The notes beneath the pieces were generated by a model that saw only the letters and a program-made list of their open reading frames with translations, did no database searches and was not told the DNA's origin. This document shows, in pieces, positions 7,967 to 21,472 of a DNA stretch of 64,000 bases. The position numbers and the translations under genes are program-made. The stretch covers positions 1,612,001-1,676,000 of the forward strand of contig NC_047073.1 in assembly GCF_902459465.1 (NCBI RefSeq), given 5' to 3'. Numbering within the stretch: position 1 is the first letter of the stretch; every line of letters starts with the position of its first letter. This stretch comes from Asterias rubens. Taxonomy: Eukaryota.

Positions 7967-8794
7967 CTTGACCTGAAGTTAAAAAAAGAAAAGCATTAGT
8001 TAGAAATCATCAAATAGATAGGTGATACAAAGTTACTTAAAATCTTGACATTGTTGTTCCGTTTTTTAACAGCTTATTCTCTTTTTCACTTTTAAAAAAA
8101 CATTATAAGTTTTTTTTAAAAGTAAATGAGACTGAAGAACTTAATTATACTTTTAATAAGAACAAGGATTAGAAATAACAAGGTATGATGGTTGAAAATG
8201 CAGTTTAAATTGCCCCACATCATTACGAATCTTAATGTAAGAACATAAAAAATATTTTAAGTGGAAAAAAAACTTAATTAAAATTATCTTAAATTAAAAA
8301 GATAATCAAAGAGTTTTTCGGCAAAGGTCGGGTTAATAAATTAAACTTATTATAGGTAAAACTAGAACGGAATATTTGTTATCTGATTTGACCCATGTTG
8401 GCATGTTTGGCATGTTGGTGTAAGGGGGTGATTATTGAGGTAAATTCGTGATGAATAAAACAAATAATGATGCCTAGTATTTTTCCTTTCAAAAAAGTTA
8501 GCTCTTCTTGTTGTCGTCAACCATGTCAAATAAGCCTGACGAATTATGGATAAATACCTTTTACGAGAGGATATTGAAAAATATTGAACAATTTATTAAA
8601 TAAGTTACATTGAAAAATACAGTTTCCAAGTGTCGGAAATACATGCTCAAAGACTAACACAACGTACAGTTCAGCCGGTTCGTCGTAAATTAAAATTTAG
8701 ACAAAAACAATGCAAGTTTTTGTGGACCTGAATTCTGAAAATTCACAGACAATATTTTGAATCGATGTTATATAATGAAAAATTAATATCTTAC

Positions 8795-8931
8795 CTTTTA
8801 TTTTACTTCCGGCCAATGTCCAATTTTGTCTTAGTATCTTTTTATTATGAATTTTTCGATCCGACGATTTGTTGACGATCTTCACAGCCCGGAAATCTTG
8901 GTCCCCATATTGATATCGTTGTCATGTCAAC
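8795..8931 (-). promoter_or_regulatory. Putative CFAP57 non-coding first exon and promoter with an RFX X-box
   Basis: The ATG exon is preceded by an acceptor (exon starts 7972), so a 5' UTR exon must exist. Strong minus-strand donor AAAG|GTAAGA at 8795/8794. ETS-like CCGGAA cores near 8806 and 8889. X-box-like GTTGTCATGTCAAC at 8918-8931. Confidence 0.55.
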
Positions 8932-10345: not shown

Positions 10346-13300
10346 TCATTTCATAGTAACGAAACGACTTTCAAATTCGTCGATACTCACAGGAAGGTTT
10401 GTCTTTTCATCGTAGTCCGCCCACTCCTGGAACAAAAGTCACAAAAAGTTAACGATAAAGAAAATACGATGGAAAAACTTAATTAAAGAACAAAGCAAAA
10501 TCTTAACTCATGATTATATTGTTTTTGGGTTTTTTTAATCGCTGGATATGAACTATGCTAGTCTTGTTCATAGTAACCGATATCTCACTAACTTTTTCTG
10601 TCAAATCAACTTCAAATTGTGTCGTTGAATCTGCTCCTTTCGCCTGAAATCCCACCTGACAAAAAGAAAACGAAACGGTCAAGTAAATTAAGAGAAAGTA
10701 CAGCAACGGTTGAATGCAATGTTGCTATTATCAACAGTTGGTGCTATAGGTAGGGTGATAAATTGTTAATGTTTTTTTGTCAACAAAAAAGCTGATGTAT
10801 TAGCCACAAATATCAAGAAAGATGCAATATAAGTGAATGTTTCGTCTGGACTACAGGGTCTACAGACAGCAACAAAACCTGTCATTGTATTTTCACAAGA
10901 ACATCCAATCCATCCATGTTAATGCAGGAATCAATTCTCAGATTCAAACGATTTTATTGATTTCTGAACACTGAGGGGCATTTCAGACAAAAAATTCGCA
11001 GGATGCTTTCTACCATTACCATTTTAATAACAAATAAGCTTTCAGATAGAAGCTACATCAGTTTTTAAAATTTTTTTGGGGGGGAGCAGGGGGTCATTAG
11101 TCCAAAGTAAGACCCTACCAATGCCCTGAATTTCATCTTGAAAGGGCAAATCCATTTTCATTTTGCAAAGGGCACTTCCATTGGAAAATCTTAAGGCCAA
11201 TAGAAATGTTTTGAAGGAACACCAAGGCCACGACCAGGGGCAAGGGAGACCACGTCCTTCGTAGCCTGTATGTAAGTCCAGGGGTGGATTTCACAAAGAG
11301 TGAAGACTAGTCTTAACTCGAGTTACTCTTCCTAACTTAGGACTGTACATACGTTTTTAATATCTCCTAGTAACTCTTTGTGAAATCGACCCCAGGCCTG
11401 CCTACCTTTAACAAATTCTTTAACAGTTAGTTTAAAATTAAAGGAACACGTTGCCTTGGATCGGTCGAGTTGGTCTTTGAAAAGCGTTCTGTAACCGTTT
11501 GTTATAAAAATGCATATGATTAGAAAGATGTTGTAAAAGTAGGATACAATGACTAACATGGTCAGCCATTTATGGGAGTCAATTTTTTTACTCCCATAAA
11601 AGGCGACCGTGTTAGTTCGCGACATAAAAGGAAAACTGTGCAATTTTGAGTGATACTTGTGTGGATCATTATATTCTACTTTTAAAACATCTTTCTAACC
11701 ATATGCATTTTATCACAAATGGTTACTAACGCCTTTTTTAGACCAACTCATCCGATCCAAGGCAACGTGTTCCTTTAATGAAAAATTAATTATTCTTCGG
11801 TTTATAAGACTGAAAACAAATTACCCTTGGTGAGAAGTCCACTGGTTCCATTCCTCTACATTCAAAACCAATTATCGTCTTGAACTTGTTGCTGTCCTCT
11901 GCATTATAAGCTTTATATGAATCCTTCAATATATCTTCAGAAAAAAATGGGAGGAAACAATTTCCAAATAAGTATACATTTTTAAGGGAGGCTCATAGAT
12001 TTGTCACCGTAAGAGTGATTTACAGTTAAAATGACAAAGATACAATAAAAGTCATAATGAGTGCATTTGACTAGCTTCCCTGGGTCGACCCCGCGGTGCT
12101 TACTCAGGTGAGCCCCTGACAAGAGCTAATCAAATGATCACTCGCCCTCTTGTGGTGACGTCATGCACCTCGAGCTAGCCCCAAGTGACCCGTTCCACAA
12201 GCAGTGCACTTGGGGCTGACCAGAGTGAGCCCCTGGAATTACGTCAAAGCTATTCGAACAGACCGGGGGCAGATCGGGACGACCCGGGAAGCTAATCAAA
12301 CCCACCCATAGTGAAAGATTCAGCTATAAACAACACAGCATGAAACTGAATGTCACAACTATCAATGCTTACAGCGAGGTGACAGCGGGTACAAACCGCA
12401 TCACTGGCCTTAGCATTCATGAATAGACACTAAGCCTCAGAAATCTAAGAGACGAGTCAAGCATGAATCGTTTCTGAGATTCAATTGTTTTCATAAACAT
12501 TTGAATTCCTCACCTTATTGAGACAGTTGCTATGTTACATGATTCGGGGCAAGCTTTTGAGTAGTTACGTGAACACCCATACACAATTCCGAATCAGGCT
12601 TTGTTCATCTTGAGGTTGCATTGCGAAGGATTGCCCCAAACTATTTGACATAGCATCTGTCTCTATAGTCTGAGGACTTCAAATGTAAGCGGTACATTGT
12701 GACTAAGCAAGTCATCGTACCAGACATTATTCAAATCTAACTCGCAAATGGCTTATTCGTTCCCTTTAACATCCCAACTGACCGATGTGATTTTCCCGGC
12801 TGCACATTTTGCACTTTGACACCATGCTTGCTGACCCCCGACCTCCTTTGGTTGGTGTATTTTCCTGTGTTAAAAAAAGCAATACACAAGAAAAAAAAGT
12901 ACATAAATTTTAAGTAGGGGCAATCCATTACCAGACCAACTCCACCCACAACCTCCAGAAAAAAGGGGGGGGCAGGAAACAAATAAGCGGTTTCAAGCAA
13001 TGGTGTTTCTGTTCAGTAGAATGTGGGTTTGAGTCCCATTCAAGACACGTGTGTCCTTAAGCAAGCATGATGCTTCGTCCTTCGGATGGGACAAAAGGCT
13101 GTTGGTCCTGTGTGTTGTGTAACGCGTGAAAAAGAACCAAGCTCATTATTGTAAAGAGAAGGGGTTCGTCCCGGTGTTCCTGGTTTGATTGGCTGCATTT
13201 TGCGCAATAGCACCTTGTAAACCATTATGGTGCTGTGTTAACGGAGTTGGTTTCATAATTCAAACATAGTTCCACACACCTTGCAGGAAAATACTGAATG

Positions 13301-15872
13301 TTGAAGCGCCTTGAGTGTCACGTCACTAAGTGACGGATATGAGTGCAGTCCGGAGGTTGTTGGTTCAAACACCCCTCTAGTCAATTTTTCTTTGTTCGAC
13401 CCGGAAAAAAAAATATGTGTACTGAGGAAAAAATCTGTTGCACAAAACAAACAGGCATAACACCCAACAAACATACCAACAAACAGACTATCAGACAAAA
13501 CCCTACAAAGAAACTAACAATACAAGGTATTTACTTACAGTGAGTGTTAAATATTGCCATGATTCTTTAACTGTTCCACAGTTTGAACATTTTATCTGAA
13601 ACATAAAGAAAACAGCAATACCATTACAATACCATTACAAACAGTCATAACATTGAAGAAAATGGAAAAAACAAAACAAACAAACATGTGATATCCCTAA
13701 GAGACTCGTTTTTATGCAAAAGTTAACAAAGGGGTGTGTGGTGTAATCTTACGCCAAATATGCAAGAAAACACCTAGGCAAACCCCTTTATTTGTGATGA
13801 GTGCAAAATTGGAGAAAATTAAAAAAAAACAAAAAAACAAGCGATATCCCTAAGAGTAAGACACCCAATTTTAGCAAGGGTTTGTGCAATCTGCAGCCAC
13901 CAATGCCAAAAAAGCACTGAGGTAAACCCATTTTACTAGTGATGAGTGTAACTGGGTTCTTATTTAAATGACTTGCACAACACACTTTTAGAACTTTACA
14001 TCTCGTCAGAAGGATGAGGCAATAAGAGACTTGGTTTCTTGCTTAAAGGCACTGGACACTATTGGTTATTACTCAAAATAACTGCTTAAAGGCACTGGAC
14101 ACTATTGGTTATTACTCAAAATAACTGCTTAAAGGCACTGGACACTATTGGTTATTACTCAAAATAACTGCTTAAAGGCACTGGACACTATTGGTTATTA
14201 CTCAAAATAACTGCTTAAAGGCACTGGACACTATTGGTTATTACTCAAAATAACTGCTTAAAGGCACTGGACACTATTGGTTATTACTCAAAATAACTGC
14301 TTAAAGGCACTGGACACTATTGGTTATTACTCAAAATAACTGCTTAAAGGCACTGGACACTATTGGTTATTACTCAAAATAACTGCTTAAAGGCACTGGA
14401 CACTATTGGTTATTACTCAAAATAACTGCTTAAAGGCACTGGACACTATTGGTTATTACTCAAAATAACTGCTTAAAGGCACTGGACACTATTGGTTATT
14501 ACTCAAAATAACTGCTTAAAGGCACTGGACACTATTGGTTATTACTCAAAATAACTGCTTAAAGGCACTGGAAACTATTGGTTATTACTCAAAATAACTG
14601 CTTAAAGGCACTGGACACTATTGGTTATTACTCAAAATAACTGCTTAAAGGCACTGGACACTATTGGTTATTACTCAAAATAACTGCTTAAAGGCACTGG
14701 ACACTATTGGTTATTACTCAAAATAACTGTTGGCCAAAACACTTACTTGGTAACTAGCAATGAGCTAAAACATTGGAGTATAAACGGTTGGAGTACAAAA
14801 CATTATGAGAAATGGCTCTCTCTGAAGTAACATTGTTTTTGAGAAAGAGGTAAATTCTCACCCAAGTATTAAAAGACTTCAGGTCTGAAACCTTTTTCAG
14901 GCATCTTAAAGCACACAAATTTCTACAACAAGGGTGTATTTTTCTTTCATAATATCCTCTTGCAACTTCAATTACCAAACGAGTCAAAAATTTCACAGGT
15001 TTGTTATTTTATGTGTACATTGTATGTTGGGATACACCAAGTGAGAATAATGGCCTGTGACCATTACCGATTGTGTCCAATGTCTTTAAGAACTTTGGCC
15101 TAAGTGTCAAGACCAGTACTCAGTCCCACACTCTGATGGCACATACTCTGATGATAGGAAACACCAAAGCTATGTGCGCTAGACCTTGTCTACTTGGCTG
15201 CGACATGCCACATGCCATTTTTTGTTTTTATTCAAATAAAATAAAAATTCAAAAAGGTATTCCCTGCTTCTTACCTTGACATACCATCGGAAGTCTTCCC
15301 CATCTGGTTGTAAATTTGTTACATTCTCAAGATTGGCTTTAATCTGAAGCCCAATTTTCTGAAAGAATAATTTTGTGTAAAGAACACAATTCATTAATTT
15401 TGGTCTACACCCATGTGTTAGCACTGTATACTCAGTATAGAGTCTCAGTAATATTGCTGAGACTGATTGCAAATAATCTTGATAAAGTGATTTGATTGGC
15501 TAGACTGGTGCCCCAACACATGATGTCATCAAAGTTGTTAGTAGTTTTGTCATGCATACTTTATTACCACATTTATCTGAACCTGTTAGGATTTTCAAGT
15601 TTCAAATTATTATTTTTATTTGTTCGTTGCTTGTTGCTCATAGAAAACCTTAAAATTTGCATATATGAAAAGTTTTTTTAAAATTTAGCTGATTGTCAGA
15701 AAAATAAAGCCACACCATTGGGAAGACATGACTGGATTTACCCATATTTGCCGATATAAAACCTCCAACTATGCAGCTGTTTAAGTAGGTACCTGAACAC
15801 AAGTTTTAATTATTTGTATAAATTAACTCATTGTAACTTCACATAAACAGGCACAAACAAACCTACCACCAT
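10346..15872 (-). CDS. CZIB: CXXC motif-containing zinc-binding protein (C1orf123/UPF0587), complete, 160 aa. Exons (minus): 15872-15867, 15358-15275, 13595-13539, 12864-12783, 11934-11825, 10655-10593, 10426-10346.
   Basis: Spliced CDS is 483 nt: MV|[28 protein letters not shown]|IKCSNCG...|[27 protein letters not shown]|[37 protein letters not shown]|VGFQAKG...|EWADYDEK...TMK*. Both CXXC motifs are intact and the length equals the human protein. Confidence 0.95.
11281..11393. mobile_element. Short palindromic MITE family E; copies at about 22502-22665 and 40465-40620
   Basis: TIR GGGGTGGATTTCACAAAG / CTTTGTGAAATCGACCCC with repeated TCCTAAC/TTAGGAC internal motifs. Confidence 0.7.
11438..11778. 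mobile_element. TTAA-flanked MITE family B; second copy at 16070-16311
   Basis: TIR TTAAAGGAACACGTTGCCTTGGATCGG and its reverse complement at both ends. Confidence 0.85.
12069..12305. mobile_element. MITE family F; second copy at about 27600-27840
   Basis: Ends TAGCTTCCCTGGG..GACCCC and GGGAAGCTAATC; internal GGTGAGCCCC motifs collinear between the two copies. Confidence 0.75.
14043..14729. repeat. Tandem array of 16 x 43 bp, identical to the MITE-A terminus
   Basis: Unit TTAAAGGCACTGGACACTATTGGTTATTACTCAAAATAACTGC starts at 14043 + 43n up to 14688; one substitution seen, in copy 13. Confidence 0.97.
14688..15089. mobile_element. TTAA-flanked MITE family A (about 390 bp)
   Basis: Terminal inverted repeats TTAAAGGCACTGGACAC..GGT.ATT and reverse, with TTAA at both ends; internal sequence shared with many copies. 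Confidence 0.8.
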
Positions 15873-17269
15873 GGTTTTGAGTTTAGGATTCTTCTCACAG
15901 TAGCAACATGTATACACAGAGCTGGTTTGATCTGCAGGAAGAAAGCTAGCTGTGAGTAGAAGATAGAACTGTAGATAAAAGAGATTCAAAACTATTATAC
16001 AATTAAATATTAATAATAATGAATGAAAATTTAATATTATTTATAGCACCAGTCCGGGGTATCCAGAAATTAAAGGAACACTTTGCCTTGGATCGGTCGA
16101 GTTGGTCTTTGAAAAGCGTGTGTAACCGTTTGATATAAAACGCATATGGGTAGAAAGATGTTGTAAAACCTCGCAATTTCGAGGCAAATTTGTGTGGATC
16201 ATTGTATTCTACTTTTAAAACATCTTTCCAACCATATGCATTTTATAAAAAACGGTTACAAACGTATTTTATAGACCAACTCGTCCAATCCAAGGCAACG
16301 TGTTCCTTTAATTTGGGCACTGTCACAACAATGTGAACTAAATAATTTAGTAAGTTTTTGCGCATACAAGTAACACTATCACAACACACCTCTTGCTTGT
16401 TGTCGTTCTGTATTCTGGTTGGCTGAAACACGGTCATGTGGGGTGAACTATGGTCTAGTGATCGCCACATTTTGCGGGAATAGTGCCCGCCAGGCACTAG
16501 TTTTTCAAAAAAGTGCCTGGTTACAGCGCCCTCTCTTGACTTAAACTGTTACTAGCAACTACAAAACTTCCTTTTTTTCCCCATATTTCTGTTCTTATTT
16601 CACATTTAAGACCGAGTTGTGTTATAAAACAATTGGCTGGCATAATTTGGTAACTAGTATATTTATTTTCCCCCTCTACTCTCGGGCCTGTGAGTGACCA
16701 TGGGAGGGGCTTATTTCCCGAGGCCGAATAGGTCTTCTGGTCACTCCATTCAAAGTCCCTCGGGGAAAAGACGTACACTAGTTACACTGGTTAGTGGTTA
16801 CCTCATTGCCAGTCAGTAGTACTTCCGTACTAGTGTAGTAGTACTTAGTACTACTATTACTACTAGTACTACGGTAGTACGTAGTACAGCTACAGGCTTT
16901 ATCAATATGAAATTTCTCGACTCTACCACCATTTATGGCATGGTCTACCCTCTCGAGCTCAGCGACTATTTCTACCTCCATGCTCAGATCAGAGGCAGAC
17001 CACACTCCTCAGTGGTACTGTACTACTAGTACTACTGTCACTGACAGACGTCCTATGTATCTCACTATCAATCATCAGTCATCACCATACATAGTCATAG
17101 ACATGATATTGATAGAGAAAGGTCTACCAATCCATGGCATAATTAGCCCCCCCCCCCCAGGGCTAGGTATGCAGGATGACCACTGTCTGATCTGATGACC
17201 CATCATGGATGACCATACACCCATGACGAGAGACTAGTTTAGAAGTGTGGTCAAAGTGCAAAAAGGGGA

Positions 17270-17445
17270 TGCACCCGGACTTGTTGCAGCTCACCTACTG
17301 TGTGCGCACGTACGGTGGGTCGTGTGCACTGCTGACTGTGTGTGTAGTATACGAAATTCGTGTGCAGATTAGACACTCACTTCATCCACGACAACTAAAC
17401 TACACAGTGCAAAGTTTTCCGATGAAAATGCACAGAAGTAAGTAT
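17270..17445. promoter_or_regulatory. Putative bidirectional CZIB/ZIP promoter with clustered metal-response-element cores (TGCRCNC)
   Basis: MRE cores at 17270-17276 (+), 17303-17309 (+), 17302-17308 (-), 17322-17328 (-), 17360-17366 (-). Candidate UTR-exon donors point outward: minus TAG|GTGAG at 17295/17294 and plus GAA|GTAAGT at 17437/17438. Confidence 0.5.
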
Positions 17446-18440
17446 CTTTCATTCAAACCATTGGTATCCTAGTGACTGCTCATATGAGTGATACAATAAT
17501 TGAATTAAACTTTACCTTTTAGAGGCATTTTAAATGAATATTTACCTTGTTTGTGCGAGGTTCCAATGTGCACGTAGCATGCACGTATCACTTACAACAA
17601 GTAGTTTGGTGCCCTTATAGGTAAAATACAAAGAGTCGTTTAGTTACTTCTCGGTACCAGACATAGGCAGAAGTGGAAATTTTGTGGGAAGTAACAAAAA
17701 AGTTTTGAAATTTAGCTGTTGTCAGCAAATAAAGCCTTTTCATTGAACAAACGTAAGTGGATTTTGATCTGAACACTTATAGGGATAGAAAAAGTGGTAT
17801 TTTAAAAGCTTTTATCTCAGTATAGTGTCAGAGCAGAGGACAGGACTTTGGAAATATCTGAACTGAGTGTAGTGTGTAGTAGAACTATGTGCAGTGTAGA
17901 ACAATCAACCACACTCAACAAAGAAGAAGTAATTATGTAAATATTTAAGCTTATTTTTATCAATAAATTATTGGAAATTTGTTGTTTCCAACTGTCATAT
18001 AAGCTTCCTTTATTTAGGGCGAATTAAATCCATACTTCTCTGGAAAGGTTGACAGAATTTATACATCGAAAGGCATAGTTTTAAAAGTGTAAACAAACCA
18101 TTGTTAAAAAAAAATTAAAACAATGTGGCACTGCGAGTAGAAATGGAACTTTTTCTTGGTAATTGTCAATCCCTTTTGGTCGACCTAAGTTTTTATTTAA
18201 TTGTGAAGTTAACTCTAATTTTATTACTGTTTTATTTCAGTGCGGATGACGGGTGAAAACCAATTGCTATAAACTGTACCACCGAATTGATGTCACTTAT
18301 CTTTCAGAGAGAAATCAGTTTTTGTTTAATTGCAAGTAGTCAAAAAAAGAACACATCGATTTCAACGAGTTGTCACAATGGAGTTTAGAAAAACTATTTC
18401 ATCTTGTGAGGCAATGTAGCGTTTGGAAAGTATCGCTGTT

Positions 18441-19592
18441 ATGAAGACAACAGAATTTATCCCACCATCAAAAATGACGATGGACCCGTCCCACAGTAGC
18501 AATATGAAGCTACTGCTTCTGCAGCTGACTTGTATGATAGCCGTGTTCCTGATCACCCTAGCCGGGGCACTCCTTCCCCTTAAAGTGATCAAGACAAATA
18601 AGTCGATTCCCCTCAGTCGTCGTTTACGCTCGGAGAAGATATTGAGTTTCAGTAACTGCTTGGCAGGAGGTGTGTTTCTTGCGACTTGCTTCCTTGGGCT
18701 TCTCCCGTCCGCCAGGGAGAAGTTCCAGGAGGTTTTCGAGGCAAGGAACATTACGGTGAAGTATCCAATTTGTGAGGCCGTCGTGATCATGGGATTTTTT
18801 CTTATTTTGACATTTGAGCAGCTGGCATTGTCCATGCAGCAGTACTGGCAGGGCGCGAGAAAGGACAAACCCATTCCCATGATTAATATTGAAGCGAGTC
18901 TAGAATCTACCAAAGAAGATGGGAAGGTCAAGATCGACACTGATCACGAGGATGAGGAGGAGGATTTGGATTTGTTCAACCGAGACTCAGACAAACAACC
19001 CATGTTAAGCTCGTCCAATCATCACTCAAGTAATGGAGGTCGTTTCAGGGTCAAAGGTCATCACCCCGATGAAGCTGGCGATGCTGAAAATGGACACCAT
19101 TCCCACGAAGATGGACACAGTCACCTAGGCAACATAAATAACACCGGGTTGCTACGGTCCCTCATCCTTCTCTTCGCTCTTTCAACACATTCCGTCTTTG
19201 AGGGTATGGCTCTTGGTCTACAGGAGGACATCAAGAGTATAGTGTACCTCCTCGTCGCAATGCTCGCCCACGAGAGCCTCGCTGCCTTCGCCCTCGGTGC
19301 GAGCCTCATCAAGAACTCCGTCAACACCTACATGTTCATCGTTTACGGCGTGGTTTTCGCGGGGATGATACCGTGCGGGATCGCGCTCGGGCTCTGGATC
19401 CGCGCCTCACCCGGATTCGGGGCAATTGTCTGCTCGGCCGTCATGCAAGCCCTGGCGGCTGGAATCTTCATTTTCGTCACATTTTTCGAGATATTGAATC
19501 ATGAGTTTGAGGTGCACATGGATAGACCTCAGAAGATTGCCTTTGCCGTTTTGGGTTATGTGATTCTAGCTGCTTTGGAAGCTGTTGGATGA
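18441..19592 (+). CDS. SLC39A3: Zinc transporter of ZIP subfamily II (SLC39A1/2/3 pro-orthologue, ZIP3-like), intronless CDS. Start is 18441 or the ZIP3-like ATG at 18504.
   Basis: Uninterrupted ORF with eight hydrophobic segments. ZIP3-like N-terminus MKLLLLQLTCMIAVF..LLPLKVI, GGVFLATCFLGLLP, YPICE..GFFLIL.FEQ, His-rich loop GHHSHEDGHSH, TM4 HSVFEG, TM5 HE, TM7 AAGIFIFVTFFEIL. Confidence 0.93.
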   Translation: MKTTEFIPPSKMTMDPSHSSNMKLLLLQLTCMIAVFLITLAGALLPLKVIKTNKSIPLSRRLRSEKILSFSNCLAGGVFLATCFLGLLPSAREKFQEVFEARNITVKYPICEAVVIMGFFLILTFEQLALSMQQYWQGARKDKPIPMINIEASLESTKEDGKVKIDTDHEDEEEDLDLFNRDSDKQPMLSSSNHHSSNGGRFRVKGHHPDEAGDAENGHHSHEDGHSHLGNINNTGLLRSLILLFALSTHSVFEGMALGLQEDIKSIVYLLVAMLAHESLAAFALGASLIKNSVNTYMFIVYGVVFAGMIPCGIALGLWIRASPGFGAIVCSAVMQALAAGIFIFVTFFEILNHEFEVHMDRPQKIAFAVLGYVILAALEAVG

Positions 19593-21472
19593 TGATGTGG
19601 GGGGCAGGAGCTCTGCTGATCAGGGCCCAAATTCTTGGCTCTCCTTACTTTTGATTTGATTTAGATTTGATTACAGTAAGCAAACAGTTGGCATTTGCGG
19701 ACGCAGGGAATTATGCGCTTGGTCAAGCATATTTCATGGGTTAGTGGGGAATCTTGGCTTGTGCGTGTGCATACTCCATGTTACTAGGCATTCTACGCTT
19801 ACACAGCTACCGCTGAAATTTTATGCTTGCCGTGCAAGCGGAGAATGGTGATCGTAAGCGCAGGATTCGGCGGTAAGCAGAGCCATGAAATTGGGCCCAG
19901 GTTTTTGCACTCTCCAACGCTGTTAAAGGCTAACTAACCAATGAGTTTTTATTGCCATTAATTTTTAAAAGTGCTTACCAAATGATAACCTTCTGTTTAA
20001 AGAAGAAATATCAAAGTTTGTCTTTAATAATAGTTGAAGTTACTCTTCGACACTTCCCCCTCTCAAATTATTTGTATGAATGTCGGATTGCCCAGTAACA
20101 CAGCATAAAATTTCATAAAATTTATGTATAAATTGTCTGTAAATCTTTTGAACCAAAATAAGTGTTAATAAAGTAAACGAAACAAAAGGTGACGATTAAA
20201 ACTGAAAATATTGGTTTCTTGAGGGTTAAAGACAACTCTGGTAGTTTTACCAAAATATTTGAAGGTGCAATAAAGCAATGGACAAAATTATGCTGAGATT
20301 TTTATTAACGAAAAAAATTCTTATTTGTAAATTTCAGATGTTTTTTTTAATGACAGAACAAATAATATTCTTTCTTTTACATTATTTAATTTATACCGTG
20401 TGCCTTATAATTTTGTACTGTTTAATACTATGAATTTTCCAGCTTATTTCAGCCGATTTCTTATACAAAAAGTTCTTTTGCATCTTAAAATATGAATTTG
20501 TATACCTGGAATTTGTCATTGCATTTTTATACTTTAATGGTTTTAAAAGGAAGTTAAAATGTTCTCAAATTTTCTGATAACACAAAATAAACCTCAAAGC
20601 GTTAAAATTTTATTTACTTCATTCTGAATTAAAATATTTTTATTCAGTTAAAACGAAGGTAGAAACAGAGGTAAAGAGAGCAGAGCATTCAGGCCTGATG
20701 CTTTTACTAAGGCAAAAGGGGCAATTGCCACCATGCCTCTAGCCTTGTTGCCCCTTGAAATGTTCCAATAGAAATTTACAATTTCCTCCTACGGGTGCCC
20801 TTTACAAAGGAGAAGCACCTTTGTGCCCTTGATCTTTCTTTCAAGAACAAAAAGTCTGATGCTTCACCGAGGCAACAGAAGCAATCGCCTCCATGCCTCC
20901 GGGGCCCAATTTAATAAAGTCTGTAAGCACAAAAACCTGCTAAGCACAAAAAAAAAAATTACCAGCCTAAATTACATTGAAGTTTCGCTGTTGTGACTGG
21001 TACCCGACTCAATTTTTGCTTAACAGCTTTATGACATTGGGCACTGGTCATTGCCTTGTTGCCCATACTATAGATACAAATTTACAATTTCCTCCTAGAG
21101 GTGTCCTGTACAAAGGAGCAGCGCCTTGGTGCCCTTACACATTCAAGAACAAACCATCAGGCCTGAGCATTACTCATAAAAATTGTTATTAAATATACAT
21201 GATACTTTTATACATTTCTTATCAGGGTAGGGAAGTATCCCACAGAATTTGCTGAGCTGAACAATTTACTTAGCAAACAGTTATCTTTTAACCCCTCCTA
21301 TTGTCTGACCACTCTGTACCAACCGCAACGGTATTAACTGATAAAGGCCTTTAGACACTATCTCAAGTTTTGATCCATGGACAAAAAATACACGGTTCCA
21401 ATTGGTGTTGACTTCCAAAAAGTTCACAGCAGGGTTCAAATCAGGGCTCAATTTCAATGGCTCTGCTAATCG

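Follow-up and report, generated by a model that had tools for sequence, protein, structure and literature searches.

Genes and Features at the Locus

The window, by which we mean the whole 64-kb stretch of Asterias rubens DNA analyzed here, carries two divergent genes with a link to zinc and a short tract dense in metal-response-element (MRE) cores (table 1). The plus-strand gene encodes a protein of 383 amino acids in a single coding exon (CDS 18441–19592), with a match to the Pfam Zip family (PF02535, E 6.5e-58) over residues 26–379. Its best named matches are ZIP3-like or ZIP3 proteins: the ZIP3-like protein of A. amurensis has 97% identity to the window protein and shares a 90% cluster with it, and the next is that of Acanthaster, at 68%. 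These matches identify the gene as a ZIP3-like zinc importer of ZIP subfamily II (ZIP1/2/3).

The minus-strand gene is CZIB, also named C1orf123. The family PF05907 (CXXC_Zn-b_euk) was found above cut-off on three of its exons, and tblastn with four homologues recovered the coding exons, save for the 6-nt ATG exon. CZIB binds zinc via two CxxC motifs and interacts with the HMA domain of CCS (PMC6160046).

Table 1. Exons, MRE Cores, and Repeat Element of the CZIB/ZIP3-like Locus, in Coordinates of the Window
Feature	Position	Strand	Evidence or remark
CZIB coding exon	15271–15358	−	RNA contig and homologues
CZIB start-codon exon	15867–15968	−	ATG at 15872–15870, "MV", then donor GT
MITE-like element, very high copy	16067–16314		102-nt inverted arms, 86% complementary; between CZIB and ZIP3-like
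Putative upstream CZIB exon	16389–16470	−	27-codon upstream ORF, donor GAG/GTGTGT; from the A. amurensis model
MRE core TGCACCC, extended TGCACCCGGACT	17270–17276	+	Precedes the mapped ZIP3-like 5' end by about 40 bp
Palindromic double MRE core GTGCGCAC	17302–17309	Both	Positions −10 to −3, counted from the mapped ZIP3-like 5' end
ZIP3-like exon 1, untranslated	17312–17437	+	RNA contigs; 17312 is a minimal 5' end, start possibly further upstream
MRE core TGCACAC, extended TGCACACGACCC	17322–17328	−	In ZIP3-like exon 1, +10 to +16
MRE core TGCACAC, extended TGCACACGAATT	17360–17366	−	In ZIP3-like exon 1, +48 to +54
ZIP3-like exon 2	18241–19592	+	uATG-rich 5'UTR, then CDS 18441–19592

The 5' Ends of the Two Genes

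Two RNA contigs cover the 5' part of the ZIP3-like transcript: one (X12 record 11) joins 17312–17437 to 18241–19518, and the other (X1 record 7) has the same 17437/18241 joint; at the end of the ZIP3-like contig, 11 nt have no match. The donor reads AA/GTAAGT at 17437/17438 (GT, 17438–9), and the acceptor ttttatttcAG/T at 18240/18241 (AG, 18239–40). A first-pass annotation, made from the sequence alone, had placed the ZIP donor at 17438, and this is where the RNA contigs splice to 18241. The same annotation had set the start sites of both genes at the MRE cluster; for the ZIP3-like gene this agrees with the 5' end of the RNA contigs, but RNA and the A. amurensis gene model place the 5' exons of CZIB 0.8–1.4 kb away.

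The 5'UTR of the ZIP3-like transcript is at least 326 nt long (17312–17437 plus 18241–18440) and contains seven upstream ATGs, one of which arises at the junction of exons 1 and 2. The upstream ORFs are all short, at 1–32 codons. So many upstream ATGs suggest that the importer may be under strong translational control.

For CZIB, an RNA contig (X1 record 1) joins 15271–15358 to 15867–15968. The ATG exon ends in ACC ATG GTG/gtaggt, giving the protein start MV-KIGLQ, and all CZIB homologues compared begin with MVK. Protein searches gave only hemichordate and unnamed matches for the 97-residue ORF around the CZIB exon and, for a mollusc-like CZIB, no Asterias protein in the best 120. A good acceptor, ttttatctacAG, abuts the 15867–15968 exon, which is therefore not the first exon of the gene; moreover, the contig continues for 43 nt past 15968 without a match in 15100–19700 at 90%, implying at least one further exon upstream. 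The CZIB model of A. amurensis has 219 amino acids, with its CDS end at 8483 of the A. amurensis sequence L007. There the peptide MWRSLDHSSPHMTVFQPTRIQNDNKQE, followed by GT, is identical to that at 16470–16389 of the window, and the sum of 27, 32, and 160 residues equals 219, as expected if 16389 is spliced to 15968. Of the CZIB exons with evidence, the one furthest 5' is thus probably 16389–16470, and the gene would begin at or beyond 16470. The 27-codon ORF upstream (16389–16470 in the window and 8403–8483 in L007) encodes the same peptide in both Asterias species, and stays in frame across the following exon up to the CZIB start, which yields the 219-residue A. amurensis model; it could be a true N-terminal extension or an annotation artefact.

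From this putative exon it is ~0.8 kb to the MRE cluster and at most ~840 bp to the ZIP3-like 5' end; the respective distances in A. amurensis, which has a shorter spacer, are ~0.36 kb and ~440 bp. A donor for a CZIB untranslated exon had previously been proposed at 17295. The motif itself, AG/GTGAGC, is present on the minus strand at 17295/6 and is kept in A. amurensis, but the RNA contig splices CZIB at 15968, and none of the RNA contigs over 15100–19700 uses the 17295/6 donor or links it to CZIB. A minus-strand ATG at 17382 was also considered as the CZIB start and rejected, as it is followed by a stop after two codons and has no GT donor that would restore the frame.

A Cluster of MTF-1-Type Cores at the Importer Start

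The factor MTF-1 binds TGCRCNC, and activates metallothionein and ZnT1 from upstream MREs. A pattern search for this core returned 42 matches in the 64-kb window, where shuffles predict 36, which gives a background density of 0.066 cores per 100 bp. Five of the matches, 17270 (+), 17302 (−), 17303 (+), 17322 (−), and 17360 (−), are held in a tract of 97 bp at 17270–17366, which is the only place in the window with three or more cores per 100 bp. These five cores had all been reported at the same coordinates and strands by the first-pass annotation, and its rough estimate of a background well under 0.1 per 100 bp agrees with the density measured.

In 100 order-2 Markov simulations of the whole window, no stretch of 100 bp contained more than three cores. 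An order-2 model of the local composition was trained on 17000–17600 with the cluster included, and is thereby deliberately generous; it gave a probability of 5e-4 for four or more cores in 97 bp, and never produced five. Cores of the MTF-1 type are clustered here far beyond chance. It should be noted that the pair at 17302/17303 is a single palindrome, GTGCGCAC, with TGCGCAC on both strands; this can fit only one protein at a time, so that the independent sites number four rather than five.

The bases that follow the cores were also compared. A G at position 8 (TGCRCNCG) is present in four of the five cores, and 4 of the 11 TGCRCNCG octamers in the window fall in the cluster. Against the extension of the MRE consensus NTGCRCNCgGCCc (PMC9820605), TGCACCCGGACT and TGCACACGACCC match at four of five bases and the other cores match poorly, as counted by consensus and not by a position weight matrix. 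The octamer TGCACACG is that of the standard high-affinity MRE-s probe for EMSA (PMC9820605). Another copy of TGCACACG is found at 19764–19771, ~170 bp past the ZIP3-like stop and probably in the 3'UTR; this copy is also present in A. amurensis (L007 11337).

Relative to 17312, the cores are at −42, −10/−9, +10, and +48, and the whole cluster spans −42 to +54; these offsets refer to a minimal 5' end, the end of a contig, and not to a mapped transcription start. At least two cores are transcribed as part of ZIP3-like exon 1, two are at its 5' end, and one is ~40 bp upstream. The MRE cluster as a whole coincides with the importer's start.

The tract is single-copy DNA. The region 17240–17440 matches nothing but itself in the window by blastn, repeat finding across the window gave nothing relevant to the tract, and the read depth is ~19, the same as in the flanks (DNA-like run X9). 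An origin from a repeat family, which the earlier annotation had named as a possible objection, is excluded by the self-only match and the flank-like depth.

Distribution of the Cluster Across Echinoderms

In A. amurensis (L007), a plus-strand core is found at 8845 as TGCACACGGACT, together with minus-strand cores at 8875, 8923, 8957, and 8994. The alignment shows the first, third, and fourth sites (17270, 17322, and 17360) kept in place, that at 17322 being identical; the palindrome is replaced by one minus-strand TGCACAC offset by 2 nt, with the plus-strand core lost. An extra copy of CGTGTGCA lies in a 40-bp insertion adjoining the 17360 site. All four positions of the cluster are therefore retained, with one core added, versus three of the seven alignable cores outside the cluster (~22 kb aligned). 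The difference has a P of ~0.1 between species that are only 7–15% divergent here, and is no more than suggestive.

We inspected 21 kb at each of six further ZIP3 loci, from Acanthaster, Lytechinus pictus, Amphiura, Diadema, Anneissia, and Antedon. None of them has three or more cores in 150 bp within 10 kb on either side of ZIP3. In the 3 kb upstream of the ZIP3 ATG there is no core in L. pictus and one in Acanthaster. The Diadema locus has five cores in 700 bp at 2.3–3 kb upstream of the ZIP3 ATG, and the Amphiura locus has four in 750 bp; as clusters both enrichments were rejected (P ~0.04 and ~0.13, respectively, by a rough Poisson estimate corrected for ~30 windows per locus). No MRE cluster was found at the CZIB loci of the sea urchin, Acanthaster, Saccoglossus, or Ptychodera either.

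A search with the promoter (17150–17500) against Acanthaster and the other classes returned only chance matches of 11–15 nt (blastn-short). As promoters are thus unalignable beyond the genus, site-by-site orthology can be judged within Asterias alone. The conservation that the first-pass annotation had named as a check extends to A. amurensis, where the cores are kept, but not to the other echinoderm loci, which have no cluster. By its distribution, the cluster seems to have arisen within the Asterias lineage and not to be an ancestral feature of echinoderms; at most, it could span the forcipulatid sea stars.

Gene Order of CZIB, ZIP3, and OGFOD1

The order CZIB (−), ZIP3 (+), OGFOD1 (−) is common to A. 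amurensis, Acanthaster, and L. pictus. In Amphiura, Diadema, and the two crinoids, no CZIB gene was found within 10 kb of ZIP3, and in Saccoglossus and Ptychodera no ZIP gene was found within 10 kb of CZIB. ZIP3 is followed by OGFOD1 in five of the six loci of other species, and the Amphiura locus is without any other called gene. The conserved CZIB/ZIP3 pair is an observation separate from the MRE cluster, and a firmer one.

The OGFOD1-type gene, for a 2OG-Fe(II) oxygenase, and ZIP3 are arranged tail to tail in sea stars, sea urchins, and crinoids, so that the linkage of ZIP3 and OGFOD1 is kept more widely than that of CZIB and ZIP3. In Ptychodera flava, an identical CZIB protein is encoded at two places ~1.27 Mb apart on the same chromosome, and both copies adjoin the same TPR gene; the pair reflects either a segmental duplication of recent date or a duplicate in the assembly.

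Comparison with Known MTF-1-Controlled Promoters

The closest precedent is mouse Zip10 (Slc39a10), where MTF-1, acting through an MRE at +17 within the untranslated first exon, blocks Pol II and so represses the gene (PMC3124522); for zebrafish zip10 a similar repression through an MRE cluster is cited in the same paper. The starfish case shares with mouse and zebrafish Zip10 a zinc importer of the ZIP family as the target, and with Zip10 the placement of TGCRCNC at or downstream of the start in a first untranslated exon, and the logic to be expected would likewise be an importer turned off at high zinc. It differs in the subfamily, as the starfish gene is of the ZIP1/2/3 type whereas Zip10 belongs to LIV-1; in the number of sites, with four to five in a cluster as opposed to one in the mouse; and in that it concerns an echinoderm and is known from sequence and RNA contigs, the start being a contig end. 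The ZIP3 promoter of yellow catfish has a functional MTF-1 site, with MTF-1 named as a direct regulator (PMC7503416). The transporter is of the orthologous type, but the catfish site is single and distal (−1327/−1343) whereas the starfish sites are clustered on the start, and the two promoters have no sequence homology.

In density, the tract resembles the promoters of metallothioneins and ZnT1, with four to five cores in ~100 bp, in both orientations, 20–40 bp apart, and close to the start; mouse Mt1, for instance, has five MREs, a to e (PMC7503544). The clusters of metallothionein and ZnT1 are, however, upstream of the start and activating, whereas half of the starfish cluster is transcribed; the starfish gene also encodes an importer, unlike metallothionein or ZnT1, and its activation by zinc would oppose homeostasis. 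The locus is like a bidirectional promoter in that CZIB and the ZIP3-like gene are divergent, their most 5' supported exons being under 1 kb apart, and in that the pairing is kept from sea stars to a sea urchin. It is unlike one in having a MITE-like repeat and low-complexity DNA between the two genes, and an MRE cluster centred on one start only. Within the echinoderms, a paper on the sea urchin asserts that its MTF-1 is highly homologous, presenting no data on the factor, and cites and scans for TGCRCNC (PMC4768315).

Proposed Control of the Importer and Alternative Explanations

That four independent MREs at its start make the ZIP3-like importer responsive to zinc through MTF-1, most probably by repression, is the explanation we prefer, and we put its chances at about even. 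Zinc-loaded MTF-1 would bind the candidate sites, and transcription of the importer would follow cellular zinc, the most likely direction being repression under zinc excess and release under zinc shortage. Repression is favored as the direction since no fewer than half of the sites are on the start or downstream of it: MTF-1 on the MREs could stand in the way of RNA polymerase II, as it does at the +17 MRE of Zip10, and it is this Zip10-like geometry on the start of an importer that leads us to prefer zinc-dependent repression by MTF-1. The position on the start of a zinc importer, the G of the extended consensus, the single-copy nature of the tract, and the retention in A. amurensis would all speak for control by MTF-1; the lack of a cluster at the six other echinoderm ZIP3 loci weighs against it, and so may the good fit of only two sites to the GC-rich 3' extension. 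Much of what the first-pass annotation read into the cluster survives, as it is real, non-random, at the 5' end of the importer gene, and compatible with a ZIP10-like repression; the CZIB start that it placed there is not supported. The cluster would best be filed as a lineage-specific addition to the known class of MTF-1-controlled ZIP genes.

The main alternative is that the sites might be a neutral by-product, in which copies of CGTGTGCA arose by micro-duplication or slippage in a GT-rich promoter that retains its CpGs, with no zinc sensor using them. Three of the sites do share this longer unit beside a (GT)4 run, and the A. amurensis tract, with its extra copy of the unit in the 40-bp insertion and other indels, would fit such a history, as would the lack of a cluster in the other echinoderm classes and in the other sea star examined (Acanthaster). 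By chance, ~11 four-site clusters are expected genome-wide, taking the rate in the window and an assumed genome of ~417 Mb. Yet the probability is at most 5e-4 even under the local composition model that includes the cluster, and the gene at whose start the cluster falls is among the few dozen that would be expected a priori to be under MTF-1 control. Further, the 17270 site (TGCACCCGGACT) lies outside the GT-rich unit, fits the extended consensus best of all, and is conserved, and all four positions are kept in A. amurensis whereas most background cores are lost; we therefore regard a neutral origin as rather unlikely, though it deserves to be taken seriously. The shared unit also invites a reading by some other factor, be it a DNA-binding one for (C)GTGTGCA(C) or an RNA-binding protein for a GU-rich motif; in the latter version the motif in the 5'UTR would control the translation or stability of an mRNA loaded with upstream ATGs. 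In favor of this are three sites in the same orientation that share more than the MRE core, appearing as CGUGUGCA in the transcript, and the seven upstream ATGs, which suggest post-transcriptional control. We consider it very unlikely, given that the 17270 site is a good MRE even though it falls on the opposite strand, is not part of the shared unit, and precedes the 5' end, that all sites satisfy TGCRCNC and four of them TGCRCNCG, and that no factor of such a specificity could be named.

The model of the first-pass annotation was a bidirectional zinc switch shared by both genes, with the MREs activating CZIB on the minus strand while the plus-strand importer is repressed or tuned. It draws on the head-to-head arrangement followed by OGFOD1 in A. 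amurensis, Acanthaster, and L. pictus, on supported 5' exons less than 1 kb apart (~840 bp, and ~440 bp in A. amurensis), on the binding of zinc by CZIB through its two CxxC motifs (PMC6160046), and on the conservation of the minus-strand donor motif at 17296 in A. amurensis. Against these stand the RNA contigs, none of which links CZIB to 17296 and one of which splices CZIB at 15968, and the A. amurensis model, which puts the next exon at 16389–16470. The comparative data also disagree: the CZIB/ZIP3 intergenic region has one core in Acanthaster and none in L. pictus, and the CZIB loci of Saccoglossus and Ptychodera have neither a cluster nor a ZIP neighbor. A search of the literature on CZIB or C1orf123 together with MTF-1 found no mention of CZIB or C1orf123 in the papers that it listed. 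We judge a shared switch improbable. Under MTF-1 control of the importer, the cluster could affect the divergent CZIB gene only as an enhancer lying upstream, an effect that is conceivable but unsupported.

If the cluster is functional, it would be the first indication outside vertebrates that MTF-1 controls a ZIP importer through MREs at the start site or in an exon; and, the subfamily being different from that of Zip10/zip10, it would suggest a negative-feedback design that arises time and again in evolution. The locus also offers echinoderm metal toxicology a concrete and easily tested promoter.

A Possible Role of CZIB in Zinc Handling

Co-control of CZIB by the MRE cluster is speculative. 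In its widest form, the idea would be that CZIB works together with the ZIP3-type importer, that the pair has been kept for about half a billion years in eleutherozoans by a shared control region, that this region senses zinc in Asterias through the MTF-1 cluster, and that CZIB is itself a target of MTF-1; we think of this as a long shot, which draws mainly on the conserved gene order. If true, CZIB would be a component of cellular zinc handling. The CZIB/ZIP3 pair is a cheap lead to the function of CZIB, a link that the MRE cluster alone does not establish.

Repeats in the Spacer and in a CZIB Intron

The MITE-like element in the spacer between the two genes stands apart from the MRE cluster. 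Read depth over the repeat at 16024–16331 is 1e5–1e6 in every run compared, and relatives of the element are seemingly present elsewhere in the window, for example as similar ORF peptides at 11332–11643. Between the element and the MRE cluster, low-complexity tracts of the TAGTACTAC type occur at 16836–16887 and 17010–17040; they are largely absent from A. amurensis and explain much of the longer spacer of A. rubens.

A perfect minisatellite with a unit of 43 bp is located at 14040–14729 (16 copies, 99% matches), in the CZIB intron between the exons at 15271–15358 and ~13524–13601. A. amurensis apparently has a single unit, as all copies in the window align to L007 6743–6786.
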